A stretch of DNA of 64,000 nucleotides, taken from contig NW_027271834.1 of assembly GCF_040938485.1 (NCBI RefSeq), positions 248,001 to 312,000 of the forward strand, given 5' to 3'. The notes under the pieces were generated by a model. It ran no database searches. It saw only the letters and a list, made by a program, of their open reading frames with translations, and was not told the DNA's origin. Positions within the stretch are counted from its first letter, which is position 1, and each line of letters opens with the position of its first letter. Of this stretch, positions 4,266-42,989 are shown in pieces. This stretch comes from Diadema antillarum (lineage: Eukaryota). Both the position numbers and the translations under genes were made by a program.

Positions 4266-7200
4266 ATGCCTCGCACGGGAAGGAGATGGGTCCTCGTCAA
4301 GTACTTCGAGGGTCACCCGAAGGATGGTGATGTCCGTCTGGAGGAGTTCGAAATCCCACCCCTCAAGGATGGAGGTATTATACTATGCACTATCTGTGTG
4401 TATGTACATTGTATATGTGTTTGTGTAAATCGTGTGTAAGTGTGAGGATGTGTGTATGATGTGTGTGTGTGTGGGGGGGGGGGGTGTGATGTTTTATTAT
4501 ACCAAAGTACACGTATATGTGCATAATGGATGATTGATCATCTTTGTCTGTGAATTGTCGATTTCGGCAGTGAGGGATTTAACAGTTTATGACTTTATCA
4601 TGGACTTGATCTGATGCGATCTGAGCCGATTGACTTGACTAACAAAATTAATGATGAATTATCATAATGCTTAGGTTTTAATACCCCAAATATCTTGGAA
4701 CAAGCTTTATATTCAAGTTTATTTCAGGTCTTTCATTTTTCTTTCTTTAATTAAATGAACTATGTTGTCATAGGTTTGGGCCGTGTCAGGAGAGTCTCAG
4801 ACAACATTAATTCATGGCAACCTCTTTACTGGGGTTGCAATGAATAACACATTGATGACATTTATTTAGAAGGCTGTAATAACGGAGACCTCTTTCATCT
4901 CGAACGGACAGCAAAGAGCTTATCATATAGAATCATTATCTGCAACAGAAGATGGGGAAAATTTAAGTATATACGGTGGTGGAAGGAAGGTGGTGCGTGT
5001 GGTACAAAATGTATGCTACAGTAGGAACCAAGTTGGTAGGAACGGAGGGAAAGTGGAGGGGCGGACAGCAAGGTTGTCTAGACTGTGTTAGAAAGTATGA
5101 CGAAGAGCGATGCGTATACTGTTTGGCTGTATGTTTACGTTTGCCTCATGCAGATTTGTAAAGATTGTAATCCAGAGGTTAAGTTGTGCTGTAGCTACCC
5201 GTTAATTACCAATCGGTATTGTGTGTGTGTGTTGATAATTATTATTTTATTGGTATATTTGATTCTCAGAGGTACTTTTGGAGGCTGAATTCCTGACAGT
5301 GGATCCATACATGAGGTATTAAGGCCTATGTTAGATTTATTAGTGCCTTCTTAGATTGTCAACTGATTATTGAAAAAAAAATTCAAGAAAACTAAAATGT
5401 TGCAACTTCTGCAAACCTTTGATTTCGTGTCTATTTCTTATTGATAGTGCTTGTATCTTTAATGTTGTTGACAGTTCAAGTGATCATGGAAAACGAGACT
5501 ACAGAAATGTATTTTAGGCATGATAGTTATAAGTTTCTGGACTTTCAATAGTAGTGTATTTTAGTATTTATGCTTGAAAAACATAAAAGATTGCATGCTC
5601 ATGTTTTTGTCTGCAGTGGTCGTAGTAATTTTTATACCAAACTCTGCAAACGACATGCATTTTTGGATTTTACTTAAGGCTGCCCCCACGTGGTTGATTA
5701 TCTATTCAATGTGTTTTATTCACTGTGCTGATACTAATTAGAAGTACAATGTGTTGTTGAAATAAAGGAAACTGTGGTGTAATTGTTGAATAATCAAACT
5801 TGTGACGAACTATCACACGTCACTGTGGTAGTATTTACAGAAACGGTTTGCTGAACGATAATATATCATTTATTTCGGGTTACAGATCACTGAACAAGAC
5901 TCTAGAACTCGGATCCGTTATCATGGGAGAGCAGGTTGCTCAGTAAGTTCAATTTTCTGATGACATTATTAAACCGGAAATGTCAATTAATCTGAAGTTC
6001 CATTCTGATACTACATCAATAACTGGATCGATAATCTCCATGTGCATGACATACTCTAACTTTGCGTCTCTTTGGAAAAAGTAAACATAAGAACATTTTG
6101 CATCATTCTACAGGAATATTAGGCGAAAGCTACAGAAAATGTCGAAATTTCAAAATTGTACCTGAATGAATGAGAAAAAAAAAAACTTTTAAGGCGATGA
6201 AGCCTTCTCTACTCCAACTCCTCATTTTTTGAAACAAAGAATTGCAGGCATTAATCAGTCGACCTTCTTGTAAAAGAAGAAAAAAGTTTTATTGACGTCG
6301 ATATCAGGACATATTCGTCAATCAGTTGCAATTAACACACACACACACACACACACACACACACGCAAAATGTTATCACTTCGAATTACCTAGTACCCGC
6401 TGCACGCTATAAGGATGAGAAACAGCACTGGATGTCGGGCAGAAGCTCCATGGTCTAGTGGATGAGGCCCCTGATCTGAGATCAAGAGGTCGTAGGCTCG
6501 TATCCTGTTCGAGTATTTCCATTATTTACTTTATCATTGCTACCACTAAAACACTTTTCAATTCAGTGATTATTCACGTCGATGTAGGGCACTTCGTCAA
6601 TCAGTTGCAATGAAAAAGAAAGAAAAAGACCTATGGTATTTCGTATTCTATGTTGTGCTTCGTGTAGTTCAGGTGTTTGTTTTCTGCATGTATGTATTCT
6701 TAATGGCCAATTCAAAGCGTTCCTTCATTTACTCCTAACAGGGTCATTGAGAGTCGCAACAAGGACTATCCAGTGGGAACATGGACGTTGCCGTTTTGCG
6801 GCTGGACAACACATTCGATTAATGACTGTAAAAACTTGACCAAAATGCCACAGATGCCAGACGGGGCCCCGAGATCCTACGCAGTCGGCGCCGTCGGGAT
6901 GCCTGGGTAAGAATAATCCCACCTTGACTTCGATCATTATCATTATTTTTTACTTAGATTTTGACATTTCAATATTTGTATTCTCCCTTTGTTTTGTCCC
7001 CCCCCCCTCTCCACTCTACTCTTCTTTATTATGATGTTTCTATAATATCATATCTACAAAATTATGTGCACGTGCGTGCCTGACTTACGTGCCTGACTAC
7101 GATATTCTGAAATCTTGACATGCTTGACAAGAGTATCAATAGGACCCATCAGGCCCCCATTGAGGCAATGGGGTAAAGTAACTGCATCTTGCTTCTTGCG

Positions 7201-41200: not shown

Positions 41201-42989
41201 GAATAAACGCCAATGATGAGAAGCAGCAAACCTCAGAACATGACTGATTTCGTTACATTGGATTGGAAATTATCGATTCGCTCGCTAGCGCTCACACATA
41301 TGACTTTTTCTAATAGTAAGACAGACATATCATCTTCCCTTGCTATCTGTTTTTACTATGGAAAAATGTGCGGAAAAGGTGAAAAATGAGGTAACAAATT
41401 ATGATCAATCAGCTAAAAACTTAGCTATCTCTTTAAAAGTACCTGCACTTCGCTAATGAAAATGTTTGAGCGGTGATACACCAATACATACCACAACTGC
41501 ACATGCGTTTTCCTTGATTTGAGACAGTTGTTATCTTCTGCGCATTTAGTTTATAAATTTTTAAAAGCTGCGTTGTGTTTTGCCCCGGCTTGCCGGCGGG
41601 GGAGCTCTTAAGATCAAATCTGGGAAGAATGTTCGAAATGCTTTTGTGACACTCTTGACATAGTATTACAGAGACATGCATAAGTTAAGGAAATGATGAA
41701 TGTCCATGCTTTAACCAAGCTTTTCTCGGCCGCGCTTCTCGCTTAATACGAAGTTTGCTATCTGAACGTGAGATTCATACTACAACTGTATCCTGGTAGA
41801 TGGTACTCGTAACTTGCAGTAACTCATTGACCAACTGGATGATTATGTAAATCTTGCGTTCACCTTTACGTGAAATCAAGGGGTGCTGTTTGTTATTCCA
41901 AAGATTCGTTATTCCGAAGGTTTGTTAATCCGAAACACACAAATTCCCTATACCTAGAGGTTCGTTAATCCGAAAATGAAAAAGGGTTCGTTAATCCGAA
42001 CATTTGTGGCGTTATTCCGAAGGTTCGTTAATCCGAAAATGAAATAGGGTTCGCTATTCCGAAAGCTCGTTTATCAGAAAATGAAAAAGGGTTCGTTATT
42101 CCGAAGGTTCGTCAATCCGAAATGAAATAGGATTTGTTATTCCGAAGGTTCGTTGATCCGAAATGATATAGGGTCCGTATAAGAACTTCGGAATAACGAG
42201 CTTTGTTTCATTTTCGGATCAACGAACCTTCGGAATAACGAACCTTTTCATTTTCGGATTATTGAACCTTCGGAATAGCAAACCTCATCACACTTTCGGA
42301 TTTTAACGAACCTTCGGAATAACGAATCTTCGGAATAAAGAACCTCTGGAATAACGAACCTTCGGACTAAAAAACCTCCGGAATAAAGAACATTCGGAAT
42401 AACGAGCTGTAACCAAATCAAGAGCGCCTGCACGGATTCCTTGCTTGTTCTTTTGATGTTTGACATCACACATAAGGCCTACTTATGTCCACGCAACTTT
42501 GAAAATCAGTCTCCTACAAAGTAGGATTAATTGAGGTGAAATATAATGTTATATTCTTAGGATAAAAATAACCGTAGTAATGTAAATGGGATTAACCAGT
42601 AGTTATCGAACACATTTCCATTTTACATTTTCCATACTGACATGGTTGGGTGATGAACATATAATGCCTTGACGTCATTTGCGGATGACACTTCTTTAGG
42701 TACATAATGTACTGATGTATATATAAATAGTACTAAACAGAGAGATACTTCATGTATTTCATGTTTATTAGTTTGTGTAAAACAGAGAGGTTGGCAACTA
42801 AAGAACTATAAATAGCTTTATTCATCGCGTTCCCATGGTTTCCCTTAAATGTATTTCTCTTGTTTCTTTTGTATCCAGGGCAAAATCAAAGTAAGAGAGC
42901 ACGTCACCGAAGGATTCGAAAACATGTTTACAGCTTTCACCGAGCTCTTCACCGGGGCAAACACGGGAAAAGCGATCATCAAGGTCTAG
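32286..42989 (+). CDS. PTGR1: Prostaglandin reductase 1-like, paralog C (recent sister of B), 328 aa, 9 coding exons
   Basis: Exons 32286-32394, 33570-33615, 34165-34221, 37139-37303, 37845-37962, 38964-39119, 39618-39723, 40815-40933, 42879-42989. Intact frame; 15 aa differences from B by manual count. An N-gap lies in intron 5. Confidence 0.93.
34264..34596. mobile_element. CACTG-type (CMC/EnSpm-like) MITE with 2-bp TSD
   Basis: AA|CACCGCAAAAAG ... TTTTTACAGTG|AA with TTAACACC repeats; absent in B intron 3; inverted copy at 40151-40674. Confidence 0.8.
36455..36834. mobile_element. Kolobok-like element, family 2
   Basis: TTAA|AGGGATCGTATAGT ... ACTATACCGTCCCT|TTAA; absent at the orthologous site in B (~20945). 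Confidence 0.8.
36943..37109. mobile_element. hAT-like MITE
   Basis: Perfect 15-bp TIR CAGGGGCGGATCCAG / CTGGATCCGCCCCTG; TSD degenerate; ends 29 bp before the exon 4 acceptor of C; absent in B. Confidence 0.75.
38358..38488. other. Assembly gap (131 N)
   Basis: Run of N in PTGR1-C intron 5. Confidence 0.99.
40151..40674. mobile_element. CACTG-type (CMC/EnSpm-like) MITE, longer inverted copy
   Basis: TA|TACTGTAAAAACATCGGTG ... CACCGGACTTTTTGCAGTG|TA; carries an extra ~190-bp internal segment relative to 34264-34596. Confidence 0.8.
41881..42414. mobile_element. GG-terminated foldback element with TTCGTTATTCCGAAGG arrays and 8-bp TSD (Merlin-like)
   Basis: TSD AAATCAAG at 41873-41880 and 42415-42422; repeat orientation flips near 42170; B has a single AAATCAAG (~27302). 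Confidence 0.9.

Follow-up and report, generated by a model that had tools for sequence, protein, structure and literature searches.

A tandem array of three prostaglandin reductase 1-like genes in the sea urchin Diadema antillarum

The 64,000-nucleotide stretch of Diadema antillarum DNA analysed here (RefSeq contig NW_027271834.1, positions 248,001 to 312,000 of the forward strand; hereafter the window) very probably carries, in a head-to-tail array, three functional paralogues of prostaglandin reductase 1 (PTGR1), the enzyme also known as leukotriene B4 (LTB4) 12-hydroxydehydrogenase (LTB4DH). Judged from their sequences, the encoded enzymes would be zinc-independent, NADPH-dependent medium-chain reductases that saturate the C=C double bond of alpha,beta-unsaturated ketones and aldehydes, and the copies probably differ somewhat in substrate preference. 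The array is bounded by the ATG of the first gene, A, at 4266 and by the stop codon of the third gene, C, at 42989. It seems to represent an ordinary lineage-specific expansion of an enzyme of detoxification and eicosanoid catabolism; Strongylocentrotus purpuratus and Lytechinus pictus have similar arrays.

Gene models and family assignment

The window has a G+C content of 38%, and comparison of the window with itself, together with splice-site modelling, delineated three related units that are all located on the + strand and arranged head to tail. Genes A (4266..12283), B (15138..27920) and C (32286..42989) each comprise nine coding exons, whose lengths are common to all three (109, 46, 57, 165, 118, 156, 106, 119 and 111 nt), and each gives a coding sequence of 987 nt and a PTGR1-like protein of 328 residues, with intact ATG and stop codons and GT-AG boundaries at all introns. 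The models were derived by a frame-keeping choice of GT-AG sites, with the small exon 3 being located separately. The coding exons of A are found at 4266-4374, 5270-5315, 5886-5942, 6742-6906, 7744-7861, 8688-8843, 9413-9518, 10281-10399 and 12173-12283; those of B at 15138-15246, 16368-16413, 17630-17686, 21095-21259, 22363-22480, 23347-23502, 24145-24250, 25938-26056 and 27810-27920; and those of C at 32286-32394, 33570-33615, 34165-34221, 37139-37303, 37845-37962, 38964-39119, 39618-39723, 40815-40933 and 42879-42989. The three genes are already annotated by RefSeq, and our translations are identical to its "prostaglandin reductase 1-like" proteins of D. antillarum (XP_071509006.1 or P0172 for A, XP_071509007.1 or P0174 for B, XP_071509008.1 or P0173 for C), all encoded on one 556-kb contig. 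A tblastn survey of the whole window with the three proteins gave no further PTGR1-like copy or fragment.

Gene A aligns with B and C only in short, exon-sized blocks, whereas many introns can also be aligned between B and C, with unequal lengths and 67-91% identity. Moreover, a stretch of about 300 bp preceding the ATG of B (14838..15137, + strand) aligns with 31985-32285 upstream of C, the whole aligned block being 76.5% identical, and hence the proximal upstream region was included in the duplication.

The only run of Ns in the window (38358..38488) falls within intron 5 of C (37963-38963) and touches no coding sequence. Exon 5 (ending at 37962) and exon 6 (starting at 38964) meet between two codons, A, B and C share one junction sequence (...AKIK|GCRV...), and across it the C protein is colinear with A, B and the orthologues and lacks none of their residues. 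On either flank of the gap the sequence can be matched, in the same order, to the only B/C-type gene of Diadema setosum, and the flank downstream of C is collinear as well. The reading frame of C is therefore unaffected by the gap. These observations also bear on whether B and C, or the two parts of C that flank the gap, are haplotype copies or a misjoin created during assembly. Such an artefact might be suspected from the gap itself and from the fact that the assembly retains second copies of loci: the array is repeated on contig JBFRCO010000035.1 (L002) of the same assembly, and a further gene (D, described below) yields two proteins, P0056 and P0176, that are 2 residues apart (synonymous divergence, dS, 0.005). 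However, B and C lie on one contig with diverged introns, the independent contig L002 shows the same order of A, B and the start of C, the sequence flanking the gap and that downstream of C follow D. setosum in order, and RefSeq calls all three genes. We consequently rejected the notion of haplotype copies or a misjoin, which we consider extremely improbable.

All three proteins contain ADH_N_2 (PF16884) followed by ADH_zinc_N (PF00107), with scores of 100-108 and 84-89 bits against Pfam cut-offs of 31 and 31.8, and ADH_zinc_N_2 also scores above its cut-off. The match to ADH_N_2 rather than ADH_N would imply the zinc-independent type, in which the catalytic and structural zinc ligands of classical ADHs are absent. 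When the exon pieces were compared with solved structures, PTGR1 chains were the best match for every exon searched, the closest being guinea-pig LTB4DH (1v3t) and human PTGR1 (2y05, 9d6y). When exon 4 of A was used as a protein query, most matches were exon-sized fragments and few were full-length proteins, among the latter a mammalian PTGR1 (P0011); the exon rows aligned under P0011 were then used as a query, which recovered echinoid "prostaglandin reductase 1-like" proteins. The database relatives are all named prostaglandin reductase 1 or prostaglandin reductase 1-like. Among 33-34 homologues, including A, B and C and sampled from echinoids, asteroids, crinoids, one ophiuroid, one mussel and vertebrates, only C239, Y245 and the cofactor motifs, including A150-G155 (AAGAVG) and N217-G220 (NVGG), are invariant.

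AlphaFold2 models of A and B (predicted local distance difference test, pLDDT, 93.3 and 91.6, respectively; predicted template modelling score 0.90 for both) contain the same secondary-structure elements, and both proteins are predicted with high confidence to fold like PTGR1. The top Foldseek matches of the B model are 9mdh, 1v3t, 1v3v and 2dm6 (template modelling score, TM, 0.96; root-mean-square deviation 1.4-1.5 Å; 51% identity). Mammalian PTGR1 (1V3T, 1V3V, 2DM6, 2Y05, 9MDH) has 329 residues as against 328 in the urchin proteins, with which it shares about 50-53% identity, the Pfam domains, the AAGAVG motif for NADP, Cys239 and the catalytic Tyr245. The two differ in a proline-rich loop of the mammalian enzyme (about 249-257), where the urchin sequence is unrelated, and at pocket positions 56, 262 and 273, which differ by copy. 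The title of Hori 2004 reportedly names a role in SH3 binding for this loop.

Prostaglandin reductase 2 (PTGR2/ZADH1; 2ZB4, 2VNA) belongs to the same superfamily and shares the chemistry, but its match is much weaker (for exon 6, E = 3.7e-07 versus 1e-16 to 5e-18 for PTGR1 chains). The sequence comparisons thus make assignment to the PTGR1/LTB4DH family secure, and to the PTGR1 type rather than PTGR2, PTGR3 or the quinone oxidoreductases. The alkenal/one double-bond reductases of plants and bacteria likewise use NADPH to reduce the C=C bond of enals and enones. Those compared here (Arabidopsis AER/P1, 2J3H; tobacco DBR, 4HFJ; raspberry ketone synthase, 6EOW; CurA, 5ZXN; PA1648, 4B7C) share fold and cofactor site with the B model (TM 0.90-0.95, 36-42% identity), but they are more distant in sequence, have other substrate-pocket loops and are not orthologues of the urchin genes. 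The original prediction, made from the letters of the window, had described three full-length, intact, head-to-tail genes of the PTGR1/alkenal reductase family with the same exon architecture, and this description is borne out by the gene models, the identity with the RefSeq proteins, the Pfam domains and the superposition of the B model.

Several repeats were also observed in and around the array. A 42-bp minisatellite forms back-to-back inverted arrays at 42010-42326, in intron 8 of C, and at 45432-45751, 2.5 kb downstream of C, and a related copy is found upstream of A (2823-3089); it probably belongs to a repeat-bearing family of mobile elements. Two pairs of inverted interspersed repeats, each with copies 88-91% identical, occupy introns 3 and 7 of C (34263-34595 and 40152-40675) and, in the second case, intron 8 of A and intron 3 of B (10410-10877 and 20403-20863).

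Residues of the substrate pocket

Pocket residues were numbered after the mammalian enzyme. The exon-7 tyrosine aligns with index 244 of the 328-residue chain 2y05_A, that is native Tyr245, and in exon 8 of A two tyrosines stand opposite indices 266 and 277 of 1v3t_A, a chain with four extra N-terminal residues; these indices correspond to native Tyr262 and Tyr273. For position 56, exon 4 starts at native Val71 and the alignment with P0011 puts Arg56 opposite urchin residue 57, while the 20-residue piece from exon 3 found no match among the solved structures. On this numbering, the equivalent of position 56 is Thr in A (exon 3, 5886..5942; codon 5899-5901) and Arg in both B (exon 3, 17630..17686; codon 17643-17645) and C (exon 3, 34165-34221; codon 34178-34180). 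Tyr245 is encoded at 9494..9496 in A, 24226-24228 in B and 39699-39701 in C. The variable patch of exon 8 contains Tyr262 (10307-10309) and Tyr273 (10340-10342) in A (10281..10399), Phe262 (25964-25966) and Pro273 (25997-25999) in B (25938..26056), and Ser262 (40841-40843) and Pro273 (40874-40876) in C (40815..40933), all on the + strand. The states at 56/245/262/273 are hence T/Y/Y/Y in A, R/Y/F/P in B and R/Y/S/P in C, precisely as first read from the sequence.

In the mammalian enzyme, Arg56 binds the alpha-chain carboxylate of 15-keto-prostaglandin E2 and acidic inhibitors, according to PMC8377670, which summarises Mesa 2015, and Arg56, Tyr262 and Tyr273 contact indomethacin in 2DM6 (PMC6702150). 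Tyr245 is placed in the catalytic hydrogen-bond network at the nicotinamide ribose by bioRxiv 10.1101/2020.07.13.201608, citing Hori 2004; PMC13748546 contains no discussion of these residues. The first three papers thus confirm the location of these residues in the mammalian substrate pocket. By analogy with mammals, A may prefer neutral enals and enones, since it lacks the arginine to which the carboxylate of 15-keto-prostaglandins binds; B and C retain this arginine.

The differences between the copies had also been described as complementary changes at active-site residues, with A keeping Y262 and Y273. This framing is not supported by the wider family. Among 33 homologues, positions 56, 262 and 273 are occupied by 9, 8 and 10 different residues, respectively, and their variability (entropy) ranks 24th, 38th and 11th of 328 columns, while the most variable 12-residue windows of the whole protein lie within 246-265 and 273-287. 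Even mammals differ among themselves: hamster and pig PTGR1 have Lys56 and Thr273, and the rodent-like mammalian PTGR1 P0011 has Thr273. Frog PTGR1 has Met56, Phe262 and Thr273, and position 262 is F, S, T, L or R in most echinoderms. Among the other urchin paralogues, position 56 is occupied by R, S or T, position 262 by F, L, S, R or T, and position 273 by S, Y, N, M or T. The copies in the array therefore do not divide among themselves specificity residues that are otherwise conserved, and any three paralogues of the family would give some mixed pattern at such hypervariable sites. The two tyrosines of A were therefore more likely acquired than kept, and may be derived or simply coincidental. 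Of the original interpretation, the family, the intactness of the genes and the location of the residues in the pocket lining thus stand, while their framing as conserved and complementary does not.

The change is concentrated on the rim of the substrate pocket, at position 56, in the loop and helix 247-264 and in 273-287, and across all the animals sampled this rim evolves faster than any other part of the family's proteins. In the AlphaFold2 models, residue 262 lies in a short helix (257-263) and residue 273 in the first turn of a long helix (272-291), a turn that tolerates proline, while the loop 247-256 has the lowest confidence. This picture could suit a set of redundant dosage duplicates that do the same job, the differences at 56, 262, 273 and across 254-277 being near-neutral drift at weakly constrained surface or rim sites: the three columns are among the most variable in the family, and the poorly modelled loop is probably flexible. 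However, the same positions contact ligands in mammals (PMC6702150, PMC8377670), so that substitutions at them would hardly leave the substrate range wholly unaffected; the differences between the copies may still alter it. We regard simple redundancy as possible but rather doubtful, and continue to favour functional paralogues that probably differ in substrate preference; further evidence on both sides is given below.

Selection on the exon-8 patch and the second contig

B and C share 95.4% protein identity and differ at 15 amino acids (dS 0.125; nonsynonymous divergence, dN, 0.022). Nine of these differences fall within the 24 codons 254-277 (binomial p = 2e-7), and the dN/dS ratio from Nei-Gojobori counts is 0.18 overall, 0.08 outside the patch and 0.64 inside. 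B and C consequently evolve under purifying selection outside the patch. A similar contrast between the patch and the rest is seen in all pairs of B/C/D-type genes, with a patch dN/dS of 0.4-0.8 in most of them. Because the patch was defined from the comparison of B with C, a check is provided only by pairs that are independent of it; three phylogenetically independent pairs (B with P0055, C with its D. setosum counterpart, and the two copies of D, D-Dhap) give a ratio of 0.73 in the patch and 0.11 in the rest (Fisher p = 0.005). The patch ratio is below 1 in all but two pairs, in which synonymous changes are very few, so that positive selection in the patch is not demonstrated, the counts being small. 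Gene A has been kept intact, with 96.6% protein identity between D. antillarum and D. setosum. Each copy thus appears to be maintained by purifying selection, as indicated by the B-C ratio and by the identity of A to its D. setosum orthologue.

The patch could be taken as evidence for a battery of sub-functionalised enal/enone reductases, whose pocket changes were selected for dietary or algal oxylipins such as polyunsaturated aldehydes and not for endogenous eicosanoids. Diadema is an algal grazer, and diatom aldehydes harm urchin embryos. The copies differ at pocket-lining positions, the differences between B and C cluster in the patch, where dN/dS is about 7-fold above the rest as it likewise is in the three independent pairs, and the copies are otherwise under purifying selection. 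On the other hand, the same positions are hypervariable in vertebrates and in other echinoderms, so the pattern is not specific to this array, and the ratio in the patch is below 1 in most pairs. Nor does regulation lend support: the 1 kb upstream of each of the three ATGs contains no motif resembling the antioxidant response element (ARE; RTGACNNNGC), leaving an Nrf2-type proximal element unsupported, and the 14 matches in the window against 9.45 expected are no enrichment (8 of 100 shuffles reach 14). Among the papers searched, none ties PTGR1, LTB4DH or alkenal reductase to sea urchins or Diadema, or PTGR1 to diatom aldehydes or to the aldehyde response of urchins, and papers on diatom aldehydes and urchins were absent from the results for PTGR1 terms. 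In addition, A is broken on the second contig. Selection for dietary oxylipins therefore seems to us an unlikely account of the array.

This second contig, L002, is collinear with 5198-37368 of the window and contains A, then B, then the start of C. Gene A is about 98% identical between L002 and the window, and the start of C 97-98%. However, an 18-kb block spanning gene B and the spacer between B and C (L002:9300-36102; window 14428-32569) is only 84-95% identical, and the protein in the B slot (P0055) differs from B at 14 residues with dS 0.098, almost as far as B is from C. An old haplotype, a duplicate or gene conversion by another paralogue could each account for the diverged block. In the B-slot gene, intron 7 (L002:18899-30491) is about 11.6 kb long as compared with 1.7 kb in gene B of the window, a large insertion difference. 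The copy of A on L002 has no annotated protein and carries two lesions, namely a 34-bp deletion (L002:640-730; window 5868-5901) that eliminates the splice acceptor of intron 2 along with 16 nt at the start of exon 3, and a single-base insertion within a run of A in exon 6 (L002:3459-3615; window 8688-8843) that shifts the reading frame. It could represent a null allele, a duplicate in decay or an error of the assembly. We read L002 as a second haplotype because the D locus is also present twice, with a segmental duplicate or an assembly error as alternatives. If the diverged gene B contigs and the broken A are true alleles and not products of assembly, they would matter for population genetics.

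Taken as alleles, these features could be combined with the exon-8 rim into an actively evolving locus of xenobiotic defence that tunes the reduction of dietary algal electrophiles. The rim (residues 254-277) would then be under diversifying selection across paralogues, B would exist as two deeply diverged haplotypes held as a balanced polymorphism (dS about 0.10 versus about 2% divergence in the flanks), and A would segregate as intact and null alleles. We consider this combination improbable. The null-looking copy of A also fits redundant dosage duplicates, as do the patch ratios of 0.4-0.8 in most pairs and the single B/C-type gene that suffices at the D. setosum locus. Against redundancy, A is intact at high identity across the two Diadema species although its synonymous divergence from B and C is saturated, which argues for a retained, distinct role.

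An array of functional paralogues with somewhat different substrate preferences remains our preferred explanation, and four points weigh against it. All database members derive from genome annotation only. The suggested substrate preference hangs on a single mammalian residue, Arg56, that varies freely across the family. Relaxed constraint explains a patch dN/dS below 1 as well as adaptive tuning does. Lastly, A is broken twice on L002, so it may be dispensable or decaying.

Origin of the copies and arrays in other sea urchins

PTGR1 is a single gene in most mammals; the urchin genes, by contrast, occur in multiple tandem copies. A shares only 65% protein identity with B and with C, with synonymous sites saturated, and A split from the B/C/D type long ago. 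In the phylogenetic tree the echinoid proteins form a clade (100/99) in which Diadema A, together with its D. setosum orthologue, is sister to B/C/D (92/96), apart from the camarodont paralogue groups, and the split between A and the B/C/D type was thus placed, with only moderate support, inside the Diadema lineage. Since the Diadema copies cluster together, either the duplications were independent or the copies were homogenised within each lineage. C groups with the B/C-type gene of D. setosum (94/87) and B with P0055 (95/92). The D. setosum locus consists of two genes only, an orthologue of A and a single B/C-type gene, followed by the same downstream flank, and B and C separated at about the time when D. 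antillarum and D. setosum did (dS about 0.11-0.13).

A fourth B/C-type gene of D. antillarum, D, is found on two other contigs (L003:10001-27578 and L004:10001-33625). It has no PTGR1 neighbour within 10 kb, its introns are much longer, and its pocket residues are Ile56, Phe262 and Ser273.

Other sea urchins likewise possess PTGR1-like genes encoding 327-328 residues, as seen in S. purpuratus (XP_001198144 and its neighbours), L. pictus and L. variegatus, and their proteins vary in the same patches as those of the Diadema array. The genes are arranged head to tail as in Diadema, three of them in S. purpuratus (L006:1-26202) and at least two in L. pictus (L005:10001-29916). Judging from these genomes, tandem arrays of PTGR1-like genes are a general echinoid feature.

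The present analysis, modest in its use, provides the correct annotation of an ordinary array of enzyme genes. It further shows that echinoids carry multi-copy PTGR1-like arrays in which the pocket rim is the fast-evolving part of the protein. In Diadema, a keystone grazer of reefs, such arrays are reasonable candidates for the detoxification of lipid-derived electrophiles, such as 4-hydroxynonenal and the aldehydes of diatoms or algae.

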